Notes: generated by a model not told the origin, from the letters alone. A DNA stretch of 64,000 nt from Monocercomonoides exilis PA203 (GCA_001643675.2 LSRY02000012.1:1426001-1490000); one strand, 5' to 3'; shown: positions 4,827-60,300, counted from the first letter of the stretch. A program made the numbers and translations.

Positions 4827-11157
<6,331 letters not shown>

Positions 11158-48306: not shown

Positions 48307-49211
48307 ATGGCTACACGACAACCAACAATTCCACCATCAAAAGTTCTTCATATTCGAAATGGCTCACCAGAGCCAAACGAAGTGGATCTGACAGTTATCC
48401 TTCCGTTTCTTTCTAATTTTGGAACGGTGATTTATGTTGTTACCATGCCGAAACTTCAACAAGCGCTCGTTGAAATGGATACACTAGAATCAGCACAGAA
48501 GGCTGTTTCATATGCCACATCTTCTCAAATCGAAGTTCAAGGACAACTCTATTTCTTGCACTTTTCTAAAAGTCAAAGTATAAACAGAGAGCCTTCATAC
48601 CGAAGAAGTTTGCAATTTTTTAAGTTTTTTTATTGAATATCAAAATTTGAAAAAATATTTCATCAGCACTTGTTGAACACCATGGAGAAAAGATCCTTCT
48701 TGCAACAGTGCATAATCCTCTTTACCCGATTACAATGGATATTGTGACAGCTATTTTGAAGCCATTTAATGTTCTTCGAATCGTTATTTTCCACACTCAC
48801 GGAATTCAATTTCTTGCCGAATTTGCCACACCAGAAGAAGCACGCACAGCAAAAGATGCACTTGATGGAAGAGAAATTTACTCGAATTGCTGCCTATTAA
48901 AGGTTGTTTACTCAACTCAAAGTACAACCTTAAATGTGCGCTTCAACACAGACATGACATATGATTTCACACGTCCCGACCTTCCTACGAAGTCTGCGTA
49001 AGAATATCGCTCTTCTAGGAATATGAGCACAAGGGTATTTTTCTCCGATAAGATTAGAAAAGATTCTGACCTTTTACGAAAAATGCTTTGTGCTTGTGGG
49101 ATCATTATCCATACACCCACACCATCAAACACTAACTCATCATCCATGTCAATGTCACCCCACCACTTGAACCATACCACCAGGCGCCACACGTCATCAT
49201 TCACGTCTTAA
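48307..49211 (+). CDS. hnRNP L / PTB-like RNA-binding protein with two RRMs (intron 48608-48666; probable intron 48998-49057, otherwise stop at 49001)
   Basis: PPSKVLHIRN...FGTVIYVVTMPKLQQALVEM (RRM1). ILLATVHNPLYPITMDI...VLRIVIF...GIQFLAEF...A..AK.ALDG.EIYSNCCLLKV.YS....LNV..N...TYDFTRPDLP (hnRNP L/PTB RRM2 signature). Confidence 0.88.
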
Positions 49212-49455: not shown

Positions 49456-52400
49456 CTATTGAAGCAAAGAAGACACATTTGTTAAAAATGAGAATGCATC
49501 TCTGAAGTCAGAATCAGGATAGAGAGGACTTCTTACTAAATGCTCCAGTTGAATGGACGGATCGGCTATTGTCGTGTCGATCCACTCCAAAGAATTCGGG
49601 GCAAGCTCGCCAGCTGGCTGAATATCATTTTCTGAAGCATCGTCGTCTTTCTCCGTCTTTCTGTCTTCATTTTGCTCTGTTTTCATTTCTGGCTGAGGAT
49701 GATTCTGTTTGTGCTTGACGATTTGGATGATCAGCGATGCCAGTGCAGAAGTGAAGATTGGGCCAAACGAAGTCAGAGAAACAGCACCCAGTCGATGGCA
49801 TCTGTTGAAGAGGAAGCGAAGTGAATGAGCGCAGATGTCAAAAAGAGTAACTGTAGTGTTCTTCCTTTCGTCGTCTTCTTCGCCCATTCCCATCTTCCCT
49901 GCACCGTCTTCATGAAGCGCCGAGTTGATCGACCAGCTCGGCGCGTCCTCGTTTCGGGGCTTCCGCTCAGTCAGGGGCCGCGCCAAGAGCAGCTTCAGCT
50001 TCTCAGCCTGCATTCTCTCCTGGTCTTTCCTCTTCTTCGCCTGCTGCTCTGTTGTGTAGAAGACGCTTCTGCGGTGCCCTTCCCCGCCTTCAGGGTCGAT
50101 CTCAAGTGGATCCAAAATGAATGGCGGAAGGACATACACAGACGATGCAGATGGAATATTGGTTGATGAAGGAGCAATCGGTGTATTCAGAAAAGTTGGA
50201 GCTTCGTATTCACTATTTGTTTTCTGGAAGGTTTCTGAAGAAGAAGAAGAAGAAGATGCAGATGATTGTTGCGAAGTGAATGTGAGTGAGTCTTCGTCGT
50301 CTTGCAGAGATTCTGATTGCATCCAGTCCTTTGGCGATTTTCCTTCGATATATTGAGAATCTTAAAAAAAAAAAAAACACGACAAAGAAAAATACACAAA
50401 ATGTTTGAATAAAAAATCAATAATAAAATGCATCATTCAGAAAAAAATAGCAAAACATATGAAAACGCTCACACAAATGGAAAAATTAACTTTTCTTCAC
50501 AATCAAAAGCGAAATAAATCTGTAACATGAATAACCCAACACGCTCATGTTTCAGTCTATCACATACTGCTTTCGTATTTTCTTCTAATTCTCAGCCGAA
50601 GACCTTGTCGAACAAAGCGGCAGAAATCTGAGTGAAGTAGAAGATGCTGCTGGATCTGCTCGTACGGATGGAGCAGAGGAAGGAGAGGTTGAAATGGTGA
50701 AGGAGGAAATTCGGAAGAAAGTTTGGAAGAAGAAGAAGAAGAAGAAGAAGAAGATAATGACGATGAAGCATTGGTGTGTTGGGATTGCTTCATATTTGAT
50801 CCATCTTTTGATGCATTCGTTAGAATAGCAGGACCAGTTGGTGCTTGTATTGATAGAGTTTGAAGAGAAGATAACAGCGAGCCAATTATCTGAAGCATAT
50901 CTCCTAAAATTCAATGAGCAATAATAAGTTCAGGAAAAAAAAATAATCAGAGAATAGGAAAAACAAATAAAAGGAGAAATAATTTTTAAGTATAAACAAA
51001 TGAAATGTCAAACCCTTTGTGAAAAATCCAGAGAGAGACAGGGCAGTCAGATGAGGCCAAGCGTGAATGAGGTACATGAGCACACGAGTGGGCAGAGGAT
51101 AAGGTGCTGGGAAGAGAGCCAAGAGCTGTGCAGAAGAATAAGCAGAGAAGTCTGTGTGAAGAGAAGAGAACAAGGGATTGTGCTGTGAGTTGGATGAATG
51201 AAGAGACGGTTGAGAAGAGCCAGGGATGAAGTGGGATGAAGGCGAGCTGAATTGAATGCCTGTCTTTCGCTTGTCAAGAAGAGCGAGAGAAAACGAAGTG
51301 ATGAATGGCGTCTGATTAGCAATTTCAGACAGAACATGCGAAAGAGATGAAATGAAGTCATACAAACAGAAAATAGGATTGTCTTTAATTGATGAGCTGT
51401 CAAGGTTATCTGATGAAGCAGCAGAAGAAGAGGAAGAAGAATGAGAAGAATGAGAAGAATGAGAAGAAGATGATGAAGAATGCATTGACCCATGGGCGTC
51501 TTTGCTTGCAAGCACATCAGCATCTGTCAAGTCAAACGAAAGAGACAAGGAAAACAAACGAGTCAATGAAGCAACATCAACAAGAGAAGAACACAAAGAA
51601 ATGGGAATGTGATGAAGATGCAGATGAGTCAGTTGATTGGCTGTGCTTAACAAGCGAAGAGGAGATATTATGAATGGAACTTTGTTTTGCTGATATTCAA
51701 TGGGATACGGTGGAACAGAAGAAGAAGAAGAAGAAGAAGAAGAAGAAGAAGAAGAAGAAGAAGAAGAAGAAGAAGAAGAAGAAGAAGAAGAAGAAGAAGA
51801 AGAGTTCAGTTTGTTGTGAGTGATAAAGTGAGTAATCATTGGAGTGAATGAGAATTTCAATGTTGAAGCATTTGGCATGTAATAAGGTGATACAATTGAA
51901 GAGGCTTTCGTTTGAAGTGCTTCTGCTTGTGATGCATTTTCTCCCAATGATTTGTTATCTTGCAACACATTCAATTGGCTGTTGGCAGATAAATATGGAT
52001 TCATATCCATCGGTTCATCCACCTTCTTCACTGAATCACTGCCTGAAGATGAGTTATCTCCAGATGACAACAGAGAAAGCGCCTGTTTCCTTCTGTTTGC
52101 AATCTCACTGGCGAATCTCTCTCCTCCTCTGATTTGTGTCAGCTTCTTCCTTTCAGCTGCTCTGGCAGACAAACGAGACAGCAGACAGAGCAAAGCAGGC
52201 GTCGATATGACTGAATACGTTGGAAGAGATAGAAGGTGAAGGAAAGGATGCCGTTCAATGAATGAATGAGAAACGAAGAAAGAAGAAGGCGGAAGAATTG
52301 TCGATGCAATGACACTTTCACAGCTGCTTTGTGAATGCAAATTGGATGCAGACATTTGATCACTCACTGATTTGAGCTGAGCGAATGTGTCTTCAAACGC

Positions 52401-53303
52401 CCTTGTGACAGTATTTTGCTCAGTTTCCTCCCACAACTTGATCTCTTCACTTGTCAGAGACAGATCATATACATCAGGAAGAGAGTTGTAATTCTCTGCA
52501 TTTCTTGTGGCTTCAACAATTCTGTCAATTTTTGATTGAAGAAGGCTTGGCAATGAATATTGATCCAACAGAGAAGATGTCTGAAGATGCTCAATTGTCA
52601 TAAGGAAATGATGAATTGGAGACAGAAATTCATTCAATGTTGAATGTGTGTAGTTCTCTTCCACAACAAGTGATGTTAAGAGAGGAAGAGGTGTGTACTG
52701 TTTCATCTGAGATGTTGCAGTGTTATCTTTCTTTTGCGGATTCAATGAAATCGGAGTGCGGGAGGATAGCAAAGGAAGCAGAAGAGGAAACACTGCTGAA
52801 GGAACAACAAGTGAATGCAACGAAGCCAAAGAGGGAGTCGCCAAGCATCGTGCGAGTGGAACAAACTGAGCATGATGATACGACACATGACGCTTCAACG
52901 CAGCCAAAGCAGGGCTGGATTTGGCATTGCCTGCTTCTGATGAAGTCTTTTGTTGTGGCTGCAGATGTGGCTGTGGCTGATTCTGTGCTCGTGTGGGGCT
53001 GATGAACTGCTTCATCATGAATGAAGGAGGCTGCTGCTGTGTCGGATGTTGGAAGGACATCTGCTCAGCTGCGAGTGATGGCTGGTGAATAGAAAGAGCT
53101 CGTTTGGATGTATCATCACTGCTTTGAGGAAGCATTGGCTGAACTTGTGGTTGAACTTGTTGCTGTCTTTGTGCCTCAAACTGTGGATTGGAATTTGCTT
53201 GGTTCTGATTCTGAACAGACTGAACAAGATGTGGTGGAAGAATCGATGTTAATCCTTGGAATGCCAATGGAGACTGCATCGTCTGCTTTTGAGGTTGCTG
53301 CAT

Positions 53304-53339
<36 letters not shown>

Positions 53340-56300
53340 AGAAATAGCCAGCATCGCATTTTGCTTCTGTTGTTGTATCATCTGCACTGGCGAGCTCAAC
53401 ACTTGCTGTGTGTATGACGAAAGCGCCTGCTGAAGCTGCTGCTGCTGTCTTTCAGGCGCATTTGCCTGACCCATCAGACTCTGAGACGACATCATCCGCA
53501 TCGAATGCAGCGAGTCGAGCCCTGCTTTTGCAGCAAGCTGTGCAGGTGTTGCTGGAGTCTGCGACGAAGACAGCTGCGGAGAAGAGGAAGCAGCAGCCAT
53601 TGGAGAGGAACCAGAGAGAGAGGAAAGCAGACCAGCAGCGAGAGAAGGCTGCTGCAGATTGAGTTGTGCTTGGCGGCTGGCAAACATCTGAGAGTTGGAG
53701 AGCTGAGATGCTCCAGGTGCATTGGGGTAGAACGAGGAAACAGGGCGATATTGAGAGAAGGCGCTTAAACCAGACGGCAGGCCAGTGGGTGTGGATGTTA
53801 AAGAAGCGTTCTGATACATTGGAGATGGTTCATCTGTTTGTTGGAGTGATGTTCTTTCTGAAGGCAAATGTTCTTGTGACACAGCTGGAGTCAATAAAGC
53901 TGGCTGAGTTTGAGACAAGTTCGGTGAAGGTGTGGAATAAGAAGTCATATGCTGTGGCTGCTGCTTCTCGAACTGAATGTTTGAGGTTGGCATTTTAAAC
54001 TGTCCTCCAATAGCTGGCGATTCCTTCTGTGGCAGCATTCTCTGAGCTGTCTGTGGAGACTGTTCATTTTGAGTGGGCGAAGGAAGAAGAGCAAGCTGAG
54101 AAATCTTGTTATGGGTGGTTGTGATGTGCAGATGGAACAGAGATTTCATCTTGGAAAGCGCATCTAATGAGGAAGATGTGGGCAGAAACGGGTTGTTTTC
54201 GCGGTTAGACACAAAAAAGAACAGAGGCAGACACAAATGCGTCAGATCAGAAAAGCTTTCATTCTTGTCTTTTTCACTCGTTCCAGTGATTTCAGATGTC
54301 ACTGAAGAAGAATAATGAGCAGAATCTGTTTCATCAGAAGATTGTTTCAAGAATTTATTCAAAATGTCACGAGACAGTCCATATTGCAACATAGGCTTTT
54401 CAGAAGGAATCAAAGAAGTAAATGTTTGCTTAGTGTCATTTTGGATAAAAGCGTCAGGAAGATAAAGTTCTTTAAGATTTGGAAACAGGCGTGTCATTCT
54501 TTCTATCACTTCATTTGTCAAATACTTGTTTGGTGCATTGTTATTGCCATTTGTATCTTCAATGCTCATCCCAGTGACAAAATTGTTCTCATGTTTTTGT
54601 TTTTCTTCAACTGACATATCAGTCGATATTTGTTGCGAATTAGACACGTTAGAAAGCTGACTCAGAACTTCAATTTGTCGAAGAAGACATAAATGTGGGG
54701 GCATTGATTCAGCAGAAGCAGAAGCAGCAGTTTCTGAAGGTGCTGATAGAGTATACACACCACGCTGCAATGGCACCGTCATTTTTGGCTCAGAAGCCAT
54801 CGATGGAATAAAAGAAGAGAGCGATTTTGAAGAGAAAAGTGATTCAGTCAGACAGGTTGATGAGCTGAGTTGAGTTGAAATGTTTGGTTTTTGTGAGTAA
54901 ATGAGAGAATAAGCATCGACAGAAGGCTGAAGAAGATTGAAAGCAGAATCAGAATACTCGTCTGATAACACTCTTTCTGTGGAGAACAATTGCGAAGTGG
55001 CTGAAGATGCAGGAGAGAACGGAAGAGGATACGGTTGATATTGAAGACATTGATTTCCTGACCGATCTTTGTCTGAAGAAGAAGAAGAAGAAGAAGCAGA
55101 TGCTGAATGATTCATGATACTATTGCTGACTTCAGCAATTGTTCTGTTAGCGTCTTCTGTTTTGCCTGGCATCTGCATCCCCACCGACATGAATGTCACA
55201 ACCACACTTTTTCCTTCCTTTTTCGTTGACGTCTGCACAATCTGCTGTGGGTCAAGCACAACAGCTGAGCAGCGGCGCCAGGAGCGGCACACTCTCCGAA
55301 CGACAAGCCTTTCTCTGAAGGAAAGAAAAGAGAGGATTCGCGGAAGCACCAGAGGCACCCACATCTCGACAAGTGCAAAGAATGGATGCTTTTCTCTCTT
55401 TGACGCCTCTTCTGCTGCTGAGATGATTGTGTGGAGTGGAACATATTTGCTCTCAGAAGCTGAGGAATCAACTGTGTTTGTGTCAGAAAACAGCATTTCG
55501 TCGCTGGATGTGAGTGACGATTGAGAAGAAGAAGAAGAAAGATGAGAATCTTTTTGCGGCTGAGGAAGTTGGACTTCACCTGGTTTGTACTTCTTTTGGA
55601 GCAAAAGAGCACAATAGACATCTTTTTGAATTGGAATATGAAAGAAAATTGATTCAATTTAAATGAATGTGCACACGTAAAGAAATTAATAGAAATTTTT
55701 TAAAAAATAAAATAAAATAAAATTAATTAACACAATAATAATGCCTTTATTGTAATCATACTGCATATTTCTTTTTCTTCCTCTTTCCACTCGTCGATTC
55801 GTCTTTCGTCATCGATATTTGCAGGAAACACATTCATTCGCGACAGAAGAGACAGAGCTTCTTGCTTCAATGACTCAAATTGCTTGGAATGGAAAACTTT
55901 CCCATAGAACACTCCAAACGGCTCATACAAAAGTTTTGTCAATGAAAATTTTTCAAACAATCTGAAAATGATGTGCAGCATTCGAAGCAAGGAAACAAAC
56001 ATAAGAGATAGGAAATATTAGTGCAAAAGATATGTGTTCAAAGAAAGAAAGAAAGAAACCTGTCAAGAACAGATGGATGCATTAAAAACTCGTCAGCATC
56101 CACAGACGTGTCCAAACGAAAGCGATATCTTGCACCGTACCTAAAAAATGTCAAAAATGAATGATTATCATAACCCACAAACAGTGAAAAATACAGAGAA
56201 TTTAAAATACAGCATCAAACCTGGGAAATCGTGGATGATCAAATGTCACACAAAAATAACGATTCCCAAAGAATCGTTGAGAAGGACTTTTTTCCAATTC

Positions 56301-56964
56301 TTTGCTGAAAAAGAATTTCTATGAAGTTGTTAAGATTTATGATAAAAACATACACCATATAAATTGCATTTGGAAAAGTGGCGACATAAAAATAGCCAGG
56401 AAGAAGAAAACGATCAATAGTTGAGAAAAAACGATGTGCGGTTCCAGCAGTAGCAAAAGAATAATGCATTGAGAATTGACAAGAGATCAAATGCATTTTG
56501 TGTGAAACAATTGATGTGAGACTTTGAGTTCCAAAGTCAGCATTAATTAATTGCAAAGAAAAATTGTTTTGATCAGATCCTTCGTTGTATCTATTCTTAC
56601 ATTCTTCAAGTGAAACATAACTGTTATCAGCACCAACAAGCGATTCAATTTCAGAATGTCTCAACTTTCCAAGATCTCCTCCCCTTCCAATACCCAATTC
56701 GAGAACTGAAATTAAAAATATATAAAAATTACAATTTGAAAAAAACAGAACATGCAACCAAGTTATAACAAAAATAAATGAAATGCACAATAAAATTAAA
56801 AAAAGTTGTATGCCATTTGCATGTGGATGTGGTGTTGCAAGTTTTATAAGAATGGATTTTATCCAATTGTTAAACGAAAGTTGATGGATGATCGGACTTT
56901 CTTCTCTTTCGCTGAGATCATACTTTTTTGAAGCAAGAGCATCATAATGCGCAACAGAAGCCAT
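49456..56964 (-). CDS. RNMT: mRNA cap guanine-N7 methyltransferase (RNMT/Abd1) fused to an F-box + dispersed LRR protein, ~2,200 aa; exons 56964-56814, 56705-56354, 56304-56221, 56140-56060, 55961-55762, 55621-51014, 50903-~50568, ~50350-49456
   Basis: RNMT motifs VAHYD..R.ESPI..L.FNNWIKS.LI, VLELGIGRGGDLGK, SCQFSMHYSF, L.PG.F.AT.PN, FGN.YF.V.F, YG.RY.F.L..SVD..EFL, EKEICNVYCALLLQK. The last motif is in the same frame as the 1566-aa ORF carrying the F-box LPRILSFLSFRERLVVRRVCRSWRR. The final junction is uncertain. Confidence 0.8.
51718..51803 (-). repeat. Coding (TCT)n trinucleotide tract encoding poly-Ser
   Basis: Pure GAA run on the + strand inside the F-box/LRR ORF. Confidence 0.9.
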
Positions 56965-57152
56965 TAAGCTTCGTTTGCAATAAAATAAAAAAAGTAAAAA
57001 TTTGCGAAAGCTATATGGGTCTGTTAGAAAAATATTTGTTAATTATTTGCCATAAGAAACATCAATAATGATTTATGCTGAGTATCATAGAACATTTTTC
57101 GAAAAAAACAAAACTATTTTGGAATTATTTTTTTGTTTTTGAATTTTTCACT

Positions 57153-57386: not shown

Positions 57387-60300
57387 ATGAACTTGACATC
57401 AGATTATCTCGATGATATCCCTCTAGAACTTGATATTCATGCAATTATTCAATCATTACTTTTTTCCGCAAAAAATCCTCTTTCTTCATCTTACAAGATG
57501 AAGGAAGCCGATATAAAAGGTAATACAATATTCTGTTAATTTAAATTGCAAATACGACTGTCCAATTTTGAATTATTGCATTTTCAAGGAATAATAATAA
57601 AATCCAGAGAAATTTTTTTGGCACAGGACATTGTTTTAGAGCTAAATGGTCCAATGAACATATGCGGAGATATACATGGTCAATTTCATGATCTTGTTCA
57701 ACTTTTTGAAAAAGGAGGAACACCCCCATATTCAAATTATTTATTTCTTGGAGGTTTGATAATTCAAATGTATTCAAATATTCAAATATATTATATTGCT
57801 GTATGATTTATATATAATTTATAGATTATGTAGATCGAGGTTCTCAATCAATTGAATGCATATGTCTCCTTTTAGCCTTCAAAATTGCTTATCCAGAGAA
57901 TTTTTTCTTATTAAGAGGAAATCATGAGACGCGTGCTGTCAATTGTTCATATGGTTTTTTTCAAGAATGTATGCATTTTTATGTTGCGAAAATTATGTGT
58001 AATTTTTGAATTATTAGGTAAAGATCGTTACAGCGAACAACTATGGTGGCTGTTTAATGAACTTTTTGATTGCCTTCCACTATGCGCGGTTTGATTTCAT
58101 TTTATACAATTAAAAATATTTAAGATTAATTTAACTATTTTTCATTGAATTTTTTTGCTATTGTTTAGATTGTGAAAAATAAGTTATTCTGTGTTCACGG
58201 AGGAATTTCACGTGAACTTCCAAACCCTTACGTGCTACGTCAGTATCAGCGCCCACTTTCAATACCGCTTCGCGGTGCGTTGTGCGATATCCTATGGGCT
58301 GATCCAACAGACAAAATTGCAACATGGATGGATAGTCCTCGAGGCATTTCCCAAAGTTATGGAACAATGGCTGTTCATGCTTTTCTTCAAGCAAATGGAT
58401 TCGACGTTTTAATTCGAGCGCATGAAATGACTCAAAGGGGCTATCATTTTTTTGCGCAGAATCGTGGAATAACAGTGTTTTCTGCAGTTCAGTATTGTGG
58501 AAAGTATCAAAATGATGGTGCAATAATAAAAGTGTCTTCTGATTTGCTTTGCTCCTTTGTTCTTCTTAAGCCGCAAAAAGAATTTATTGAATTGTGTAGT
58601 CAGGAGCACGAACAGCAAAGGCTTGATGCTCAATCAACATCCACCATGAAAGATGTTGAATGCCAAGAAAATCAAAGCATTGATGAAAAAGCGAGTAATC
58701 AAACGAATGAAGAAAGCTCACCAATGCTTAGCGAAGCTGTTTGTCTTCCAGGAATGATTGGTGATGACATTGTTCGGCAATTTCATCCCCATCCCACGTT
58801 CACTTTTCCACCTTCACCAATTACACGTAAAGTGAAAGATTTGCCTCTTAGTGAAAATATATCGACTTCATCTGACAACTCCAGTAAGCATCATCCTCAG
58901 CTGTCACCACTTAGGACGACTTATCCGCCTTCCTCCTCTCCAGAAAGCAATTGCTCTGATGAAATCTATTCTCCCAAACAAATTAGCCATTTAATTCCTC
59001 CTCCGCCTCTCTCGCTCGCAGCATCATCGGCAAATGACGACGGTGCAATTCCATTAGAAACCACATCAATTAATGTACTTTCATCTCCACTTTCCACGCC
59101 CACTCCACACACTCCTTCTTCATGTCTAGAGCGTTCCAATTCATTTGATCCATTCAATTGTGTTGCCTCTCCAATCCAAAACAAAGCTCACAACACACAT
59201 TCACAGATTAGAAACCCCTCACCCACAGTTTCACCATCTATAGATATTCCCTCAAACACTTCCTCCACCTCAATCTCTGAATTGCTCGATCATACACCCA
59301 ATTTGCTTGCTACTCCCAAATCTGATATTACAAATTCCACATCGATGTCTATCTTCTCTTCTCCTTCGACATACGCAACCTCTCCTTTTGTCACATCAAA
59401 CAGCCACCAGATCACAATCTCTGCGCCACGGGCATTTGCATTCCGCGGGGTTCGTGTTGCTGTGATGACCGCACTCAACAATCCGCAGCAGGAGCATCAT
59501 TCGACCCCGCGAAGCAGAGCAGGAATTGGATTCCAAAGAGAAAGAAGCATCATAAGGATCACTTTGAACTCGAGGAAAATGCGCACTCAAAGTGATGATT
59601 CAAATCTCTTGGAGACAATAAGCGATATCAGTGCGAAGATTAAGAACAGCAGGACCGAGAAAGAAGTGTGCAGTTTCACAGATTATAAACTTGTCTCAAG
59701 TCAGCACGGAAAAATGGAGCAGGATGAAAACGATTCTGGAGATAATTATGCTGACAGCTGTAGCAGCGACAACATGAATTATCACTCTGCTCACCAAATA
59801 AACGATAATCCAGAATCAGAAAAGGCTTTAGGCACGATGCAGTCATTTCCTTATGATTGTGGCGAGATTTGTCACGGAAACATAATGCTTAATGATGAAA
59901 GCGAGCGCGGCAGCGTTTTCCAGTCTGAGCCTGTTGGATCGCAGTGGTATTCTTCAACGAATTCAGACAAAGAGGCACTTTCACCGAAACTGTCTGGCAT
60001 TTGCAATGAAGATGGCGCTAATAAAATGGATATTGAACAAGAAACAAGGCAAATGCCAGCACAAAATTCTTCTTGCTCGATTGACTATTCGGATGGTTGT
60101 ATTCCAATCTTCGGTCAATCGTCTTCTCCATACCATTCCCCTTTCACTTCGGCTGCGAATCTTTCTTCCCCTGCACATTCACTTTCATATCAGTCTGTTA
60201 TCCAATCTCCCATGCAGCCAGCTTACAATGAATCTTCATTTCCACAATCTCAAAACATTTCATCGTTTTCGTTTAGCCCAGCGAGGCAAGCTAATGTTTT

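Follow-up and report, generated by a model that had tools for sequence, protein, structure and literature searches.

In a 64,000 nucleotide (nt) stretch of the genome of Monocercomonoides exilis PA203, a mitochondrion-free protist (GCA_001643675.2, LSRY02000012.1:1426001-1490000; hereafter the window, with positions counted from its first letter), we describe one minus-strand gene in which an mRNA cap guanine-N7 methyltransferase is followed, in a single reading frame, by an F-box and a long tail. The gene has 8 exons amounting to 6717 nt and encodes 2238 amino acids (aa), from an ATG at 56964 to a stop codon at 49458-49456. We consider it likely that the product is bifunctional, an RNMT enzyme joined to an F-box protein with leucine-rich repeats (LRRs) of the FBXL type, which most likely serves as a receptor of an SCF (Skp1-cullin-Rbx1) ubiquitin ligase. 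Methylation of the cap at N7 is essential, and the enzyme that performs it normally stands alone as a small protein or is fused to further capping activities. F-box/LRR modules are what ordinarily plugs proteins into Skp1-cullin ubiquitin ligases. Both domains belong to textbook families, and it is their combination that is new among the RNMT fusions known or found here.

The end of the RNMT domain and everything downstream of it form one open reading frame. An earlier sequence-only reading of the window had proposed such an in-frame fusion, with five small exons that end in phase 1 and encode a full RNMT domain, an intron at 55761-55622, and no stop codon after the last RNMT strand. The exon coordinates (56964-55762, 868 nt summed, phase 1 at the end) and the matches to the Pfam family PF03291 bear out the first of these points, and the intron is removed in RNA contigs from three runs as had been predicted. 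Its splicing gives a frame reading ...EKEICNVYCALLLQKK..., which stays open for 1535 further codons until the intron at 51013. A single stop-free exon holds both the final RNMT strand and the F-box, so that no splicing is required to connect them, and two further introns (51013-50904 and 50567-50361) link this exon 6 to the stop-bearing exon 8. The fusion as a whole also stood up to scrutiny, with one frame, a splice seen in RNA, a sole PF03291 locus in the genome, and the same domain order in two relatives. Pfam scans were run exon by exon, and the joined 2238-aa model served to obtain the translation, to count motifs and to run BLAST with the two orthologues.

The five introns of the RNMT part are all short, at 49-140 nt, and rich in AT, at 18-33% GC; four have GT..AG ends and intron 1 has a GC donor. 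These sizes and compositions fit the published mean intron of M. exilis, which is 119 nt long with 27.6% GC (PMC8767320).

Transcript evidence comes from assembled contigs of four metatranscriptome runs (X1-X4) of one study, with a depth of about 5x, which we placed on positions 51150-57100. The joint 55621/55762 is present in contigs of X1, X2 and X3, where it skips 140 nt bounded by CT..AC on the plus strand, that is, by splice-type ends. One X1 contig runs from 55503 in exon 6 across exon 5, and an X3 contig crosses the same joint and extends to 55405, beyond an internal ATG at 55496 and near the start of the F-box. The upstream joints 56140/56221 and 56304/56354 are found in RNA contigs as well, at a contig depth equal to that of the X1 contig joining exons 6 and 5. 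Most of exon 6 is tiled by overlapping contigs of the four runs, and the breaks between contigs coincide with Ser, Gln and GAA/TTC repeats.

Two irregularities of the RNA data concern this same region. Contig depth in the four runs is zero over 54334-54532 (non-repetitive coding sequence of exon 6) and over 56722-57100 (exon 1 and the sequence upstream of it), with neighbouring positions at about 5x; no joint is reported there, and an intron is therefore a less probable cause of the two gaps than filtering or low depth. A second joint, 55548>55766, appears in all four runs and skips 217 nt; it lacks GT-AG ends, and one of its sides is only 22 letters long. This joint spans a GAA-rich stretch of exon 5 and a TTC-rich run of Ser codons in exon 6. 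As it combines the lack of GT-AG ends with GAA/TTC low complexity, we rejected it as a splice, and it is probably an artefact of repeats or of another locus.

The same architecture is found outside M. exilis, in line with the suggestion that related protists be searched for it. An exhaustive HMMER search with exon 2 as the query recovered no stand-alone close relative. It did recover two long proteins that begin with the RNMT domain, KAK2946444.1 of Blattamonas nauphoetae (1336 aa; P0006) and KAJ4461317.1 of Paratrimastix pyriformis (929 aa; P0005), both with the order RNMT, F-box(-like), tail. In both, PF03291 matches up to profile position 314 of 315 and an F-box(-like) match follows 50-60 residues on. 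The joined M. exilis model aligns to the Blattamonas protein in one segment through the F-box (residues 1-405 to 1-368, E=6e-76), and blocks of the tail are collinear as well (for example 1611-1846 to 957-1127, E=3e-20), with a block of the form ..LHAWP.L..L.. also present in Paratrimastix. Gene structure agrees with this picture. All five of these intron positions recur in Blattamonas, whose last exon, a single one of 3162 nt, encodes the last strand together with the F-box and the tail. Paratrimastix has 13 introns, 3 of them at positions common to both oxymonads, including one directly before the last strand, and the exon after that intron holds this strand, the linker and half of the F-box, namely its first half.

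The fusion join is therefore present in three independently assembled genomes, and the fusion predates the split between oxymonads and Paratrimastix. Judged from these sequence comparisons, the presence of the same fusion in two distant relatives indicates that it is an old, selected architecture. The other long proteins among the 150 best RNMT hits of HMMER combine the domain with guanylyltransferase plus SAP, with WW, or with a double-stranded RNA-binding domain (dsRBD; dsrm), and in none of those checked with an F-box. The database names of the two orthologues ("putative mRNA cap guanine-N7 methyltransferase" and "mRNA capping enzyme") mention only the methyltransferase and so hide the architecture. 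A full-text literature search that included three Preaxostyla genome papers gave no description of it, although most subscription journals lay outside that search, so that this is not proof of absence.

These observations bear on two rival accounts of the locus. The first is that the fusion is an artefact of assembly or of a gene model that merges two neighbouring genes, and the M. exilis authors do report some wrongly fused models among their earlier ones (PMC8767320). It is effectively refuted in this case: the join lies within a single open exon and not over a predicted intron, RNA contigs cross it, and two independently assembled genomes of other genera have the same join.

The second account is that the locus yields two separate products, an RNMT-only protein (if intron 5 is retained, if polyadenylation occurs within the intron, or if the linker is cleaved) and an F-box/LRR protein started from an internal site such as the ATG at 55496; the fusion would then mean little for function. 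Intron 5 does carry an AATAAA (55751-55746), equal to a poly(A) signal of the species, and its retention leads to an in-frame stop at 55729-55727; the linker between RNMT and F-box is disordered and Ser-rich, and contigs are blind to RNA ends and drop rare isoforms. A truncated RNMT isoform made in this way is conceivable, and none is seen in the contigs. The intron-retained product would, however, lack the last methyltransferase strand, which is encoded in exon 6, and the contigs of three runs contain the spliced form only and run beyond the internal ATG. Moreover, the single-exon join of strand, linker and F-box has been kept in three genera, of which Paratrimastix is only distantly related, and unless selection acts on the joined product such conservation is difficult to account for. 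We therefore find two separate products improbable, and return to the joined protein.

The N-terminal part of the protein, approximately 300 residues, is a complete cap guanine-N7 methyltransferase of the RNMT/Abd1 type with intact motifs. PF03291 is matched by exon 2 with 88 bits (E=8.1e-25) and by exon 1 with 32.9 bits (E=4.7e-8), against a cut-off of 26.6, and a scan of the whole 82.3-Mb M. exilis genome gave this as the sole PF03291 locus (91.8 bits), so that the stand-alone RNMT paralogue for which a check had been proposed was not found by this profile. The guanylyltransferase of M. exilis is a separate gene. Exon 2 aligns to chains of the human RNMT structure at E=5e-12 and keeps the S-adenosylmethionine (SAM) motif I, the acidic residue that follows strand 2, the conserved Arg and the SCQF..HYSF motif, with changes of Asp to Glu, Cys to Ile and Lys to Arg in motif I. 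The roles of these positions, with the acidic residue holding the SAM ribose and SCQF..HY binding the cap, are presumably those known from work on Ecm1, Abd1 and RNMT. The fold is complete including the C-terminal strand at 55590-55621, as judged by alignment to the strand of the Blattamonas protein, whose PF03291 match ends at 314/315. The domain begins at residue 4 and there is no N-terminal extension.

It is also necessary to consider that the RNMT domain might be a pseudoenzyme, a cap- or SAM-binding sensor of an F-box protein comparable to the LOV domain in ZTL/FKF1. A sensor domain N-terminal to an F-box is a generally known layout, and the motif I changes from Cys to Ile and from Lys to Arg are differences from human RNMT that could be read in this way. 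Against this, the locus is the only one found for PF03291 in the genome, the SAM-binding Asp/Glu and Gly, the conserved Arg and SCQF..HYSF are kept, and the domain is 43% identical to that of Blattamonas over its full length. We regard a sensor as very improbable, and predict an active-looking enzyme.

Several relatives of exon 2 come from metagenomes. Four fragments (P0001-P0004, from contigs 1.6-2.7 kb long in Logan, ENA and JGI, among them L008 and L009) have 54-65% identity to it, above that of Blattamonas, and probably derive from uncultured oxymonads; P0003 was translated through the same intron 1, and the contigs of P0001 and P0004 stop short of any tail region. After Preaxostyla and these short fragments, the best relative is a 306-aa stand-alone enzyme (P0007, 45% identity) encoded at 5435-6355 of a Logan contig of 11,973 nt (L011). 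This contig is dense with small, intronless genes, with hints of a kinase and of DUF5901/DUF5754, and its genes are arranged in a manner reminiscent of large DNA viruses.

The F-box, which the sequence-only reading had placed at about 55375-55267, was located by PF00646 at 55349-55269 (residues 91-117 of the exon-6 translation) with 23.2 bits against a cut-off of 20.5, and PF12937 gives 21.6 bits at the same place, below its cut-off of 24.3. It begins approximately 70 residues beyond the RNMT domain. The corresponding F-box-like segment of Blattamonas scores 28.9 bits with PF12937. A profile built from the F-boxes of the three orthologues, when compared with solved structures, has KDM2B as its best match (E=0.002), followed by FBXO22, Skp2, FBXL17 and little else.

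We then modelled a complex between a 106-residue segment containing the F-box and an M. exilis Skp1 (P0151, 100% identical to locus L003). The predicted complex scored 0.74 compared with 0.02 for the best of three controls, a pass that may stem from the model's memory of solved Skp1/F-box complexes and, as many of these have been solved, is to be read as likeness rather than as binding. Among solved complexes 51 of 78 pass the mark for such scores, and among mismatched pairs 2 of 108 (for eukaryotes, 39 of 65 and 2 of 126). Across the runs at least 83% of the contacts agree and the partner has a pLDDT (AlphaFold2's per-residue confidence) of at least 57. The modelled contacts fall between Skp1 residues 91-147, its C-terminal helices, and the F-box helices, which is the canonical interface. 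The genome holds several cullin loci together with Skp1. Three loci are Skp1-like, on contigs C11, C25 and C36: L003 is a canonical three-exon gene, L005:1480-1965 (minus strand) an intronless divergent paralogue of 162 aa, and L004 is partial or divergent.

The tail is where the earlier description stood only in part. The poly-Gln region was found by translation where it had been placed, and the claim of about ten LRR-like units fared less evenly: no significant Pfam LRR was found, the best match in M. exilis having E=0.056, and what held was the enrichment of the bare LxxLxL core (12 occurrences vs. 4.1 expected from shuffles) and the predicted LRR fold of an orthologous block. The best LRR matches in the three tails all lie below the cut-off, with LRR_4 in M. 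exilis at the value just given and in Blattamonas (E=0.0084), and LRR_At5g56370 in Paratrimastix (E=0.42). The block in question is the third conserved one (51015-51692), which BLAST places on Blattamonas 957-1127 at 3e-20 and which is 41% identical in the alignment. It is single copy, with no paralogue in the M. exilis genome.

An AlphaFold2 model of Blattamonas residues 950-1130 has a pLDDT of 76.4, a predicted template modelling score (pTM) of 0.76 and five strand-helix repeats. Foldseek returns almost exclusively LRR domains for this block, with weak E-values. VIA-align gives the plant protein D3 a Z of 11.8 (root-mean-square deviation 2.8 A over 133 residues), ribonuclease inhibitor 11.4, FBXL17 10.6 and Skp2 10.2, with LRR domains in 50 of the 50 rows listed, although by the program's own scale a Z of 10-12 for repeats "may mean only a common arrangement". 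Along with the F-box proteins D3, FBXL17 and Skp2, the best structural matches include the LRRs of ribonuclease inhibitor, RanGAP1, Rad7 and NLR proteins. The nearest shapes in the ESM-Atlas nearly all belong to F-box/LRR clusters, and a language-model look-up with the whole Blattamonas tail pointed to F-box/FBXL clusters, which we take as a lead only. The assignment of the conserved tail block to an FBXL-type LRR fold is supported by these models.

Searches by sequence with the tail returned little. A word search with the 1571-aa translation of exon 6 gave no match and one with the Blattamonas tail gave only itself, a scan of metagenome contigs with the tail block gave 57 pattern matches of which 0 were confirmed, and phmmer with the Blattamonas and Paratrimastix tails found nothing among PDB sequences. 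The Paratrimastix tail folded as a single sequence reached a pLDDT of 39.8 and was unusable, and the alignments that MAFFT produced from entire tails or from fragments of exons (A1, A4, A5) were dropped from folding since their blocks were misplaced. The M. exilis protein is much longer than its orthologues (2238 vs. 1336 and 929 aa), and the excess of approximately 900 residues over Blattamonas consists of poly-Gln, poly-Ser and other low-complexity inserts that stretch it between conserved blocks.

Taken together, the protein may work in the following way. The RNMT domain would methylate GpppN caps at guanine N7 as usual, as its sequence suggests, and the F-box is predicted by the complex model to dock on the C-terminal helices of Skp1. 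The F-box/LRR module would then use Skp1 to tether the enzyme to whichever protein the LRR holds. Most likely it would do so as substrate receptor in an SCF ligase that acts near the 5' end of nascent transcripts, for which the Pol II (RNA polymerase II) machinery, capping factors and the protein itself are candidate targets. Of single readings the SCF receptor is the most likely, since cullins and Skp1 are present and the layout of an F-box followed by LRRs is that of FBXL receptors. A more far-reaching version, in which the sole cap N7-methyltransferase of Preaxostyla is an obligate SCF substrate receptor that delivers a transcription or capping factor such as Pol II, Spt5 or the guanylyltransferase, or else itself, to ubiquitination, is one that we put forward as speculation and doubt more than we believe.

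The caveats on the complex score and on the VIA-align scale given above weigh against a receptor of FBXL type, and so do several further points. Pfam recognizes no significant LRR in any of the three orthologue tails, and the canonical motif LxxLxLxxN/C is not enriched over shuffles in the tail. The model of the LRR fold was built for the Blattamonas block, with an alignment of three rows, and transferred to M. exilis by homology. The F-box lies only about 3 bits over its cut-off and spans 27 of 43 profile positions (8-34), its Paratrimastix counterpart falls below the cut-off (PF12937, 16.9 bits), and, in contrast to Skp2-type proteins, much disordered sequence intervenes between the F-box and the first LRR block. 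As to the transcript, contigs of about 5x from one study cannot reveal transcript ends or rare isoforms, and among the four runs no RNA contig covers 54334-54532, 51349-51746, or exon 1 and its GC-AG intron.

Some of these same features would suit a different role, in which the tail is a Skp1-dependent scaffold or recruiting arm and not a ligase receptor, bringing the methyltransferase to its site or controlling its stability. The start of the RNMT domain at residue 4, with no N-terminal extension, is consistent with this, as are the position of KDM2B as the best solved match to the F-box profile, the weak F-box, which in Paratrimastix falls below the cut-off, and the long disordered spacer between F-box and LRR. 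Within PRC1.1, KDM2B reportedly relies in this way on its F-box/LRR and on Skp1, and Skp1 is said to serve yeast Ctf13 and Rcy1 outside SCF. A coupling of cap methylation to ubiquitination had been suggested in the sequence-only reading; a non-degradative role that depends on Skp1 would suit the data just as well. We find nothing specific against such a role, and the canonical predicted Skp1 interface together with the cullins makes SCF equally possible. Our own leaning toward it is tentative; a non-degradative scaffold or recruiter is nearly as likely as the SCF receptor, and the two do not exclude one another. The N-terminal region of human RNMT provides recruitment, and since this RNMT has no N-terminal extension, the tail may supply it here.

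The stand-alone cap methyltransferases human RNMT, yeast Abd1 and Encephalitozoon Ecm1 (PDB 3bgv, 5e8j, 1ri1) belong to the same PF03291 family and share SAM motif I, the Asp, the Arg and SCQF..HY. They finish directly after the last strand, whereas the M. exilis protein adds a tail of about 1940 residues with the F-box and LRRs, and the recruiting N-terminal region of the human enzyme is missing from it. The two orthologues share its domain order, the F-box 50-80 residues after RNMT and the conserved ..HAWP.L..L.. block of the tail. FBXL proteins (Skp2, FBXL2, FBXL17, D3/MAX2, TIR1) have a Skp1-docking F-box followed by helix-strand LRRs, as is predicted here, but no enzyme domain precedes their F-box and their LRRs follow it directly and are recognized by Pfam, while in the fusion the LRRs are split by long disordered inserts and Pfam-silent.

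The closest functional analogues would be proteins of the KDM2A/KDM2B (FBXL11/FBXL10) and plant ZTL/FKF1 type, in which an enzyme or sensor domain likewise stands N-terminal to an F-box and repeats. This is an analogy only, as JmjC and LOV are unrelated to RNMT and no homology was found outside the F-box and the generic LRR fold. RNMT is joined to other modules elsewhere too, to guanylyltransferase in trypanosome CGM1 and poxvirus D1 and to WW, dsRBD or SAP in other proteins, and in those fusions the partners are capping modules or modules that bind RNA or Pol II.

The features of the gene are collected in Table 1. Intron 1 (56706-56813, minus strand, 108 nt) is of the GC-AG type with donor GCATAC and is free of stops in frame, so that reading through it would add 36 hydrophobic residues; Blattamonas has an ordinary GT donor at this place. 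Past the stop codon, AATAAA occurs at 49305-49300 and 49287-49282, at a distance of 150-170 nt, and the poly(A) signals published for M. exilis are AAUAAA and AAAUAA (PMC8767320). The neighbouring genes leave space for one transcription unit. On the plus strand, 48307-49001 encodes an RNA-binding protein of the RRM (RNA recognition motif) type that is convergent with the 3' end of the fusion gene, and from 57546, also on the plus strand and hence opposite, there is an exon (57546-57806) of a PP1-like Ser/Thr phosphatase with a GDIHGQ motif, about 600 nt upstream of the start of the fusion.

Table 1. Exons, intron 5 and protein features of the RNMT-F-box gene, in window coordinates.
Feature	Position	Strand	Description and evidence
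Exon 1	56814..56964	-	Start codon and N-terminal RNMT helix (NNW.K motif); PF03291 E=4.7e-8; homologous to Blattamonas exon 1
Exon 2	56354..56705	-	RNMT core with SAM motif I (VLELGIGRGGDL), conserved Asp and Arg, SCQF..HYSF cap-binding motif; covered by RNA contigs
Exon 3 (RNMT)	56221..56304	-	Frame and splice sites fit; RNA joint 56304/56354 (X1, X3, X4); Blattamonas alignment
Exon 4 (RNMT)	56060..56140	-	PF03291 E=0.069, sub-threshold; RNA joint 56140/56221 (X1, X3); Blattamonas alignment
Exon 5 (RNMT)	55762..55961	-	Ends in phase 1; model; X1 contig from exon 6 through exon 5
Intron 5	55622..55761	-	GT..AG, 140 nt, 18% GC; removed in RNA contigs of X1, X2, X3; position common to Blattamonas and Paratrimastix
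Exon 6	51014..55621	-	4608 nt, single open frame with last RNMT strand, Ser-rich linker, F-box, LRR-like blocks and low-complexity inserts
Last RNMT beta-strand (NVYCALLLQKK)	55590..55621	-	Same exon as F-box; aligned to C-terminal strand of Blattamonas enzyme
F-box and next segment, predicted Skp1 contact surface	55191..55364	-	Pfam core 55269-55349
First conserved tail block, LxxLxL units	54060..54572	-	Model aa 640-810; collinear with Blattamonas 674-726, weak (E=0.09); LRR_4 E=0.056, sub-threshold
Gln/Ser/Pro-rich low-complexity insert including poly-Gln	52923..54059	-	Absent from Blattamonas orthologue, no collinear match; RNA contigs except over repeat core
Second conserved tail block	52050..52922	-	Model aa 1190-1480; collinear with Blattamonas 886-914 over a short length (E=1.0, weak alone)
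Third conserved tail block	51015..51692	-	Homologue of the Blattamonas segment predicted to fold as LRR; ends in AWPHLTALSLSG motif of all three species
Exon 7	50568..50903	-	LRR-like unit continued (GDMLQIIGSL..LQTLSIQ), then poly-Ser; splice sites and frame fit; aligned to Blattamonas 1109-1127
Exon 8	49456..50360	-	C-terminal region with conserved end (LEW.D ... YPD) and stop codon; Blattamonas 1242-1319 match, E=0.01

Domain fusions are common in protists, which tempers the biological weight of any single one. In the present case the join is conserved across a deep divergence, which argues that the two halves work together: in oxymonads and in the free-living Paratrimastix, a cap N7-methyltransferase, the only detectable copy in M. 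exilis, is joined to an F-box/LRR module. This adds a case to the short list of proteins that combine an enzyme with an F-box and LRRs, such as KDM2A/B, and the fusion offers a testable handle on how the completion of the cap may be recruited, checked or turned over at transcribing genes. Should the methyltransferase prove to be an obligate SCF receptor, completion of the cap would in these organisms be hard-wired directly to the turnover of proteins at the promoter-proximal checkpoint.

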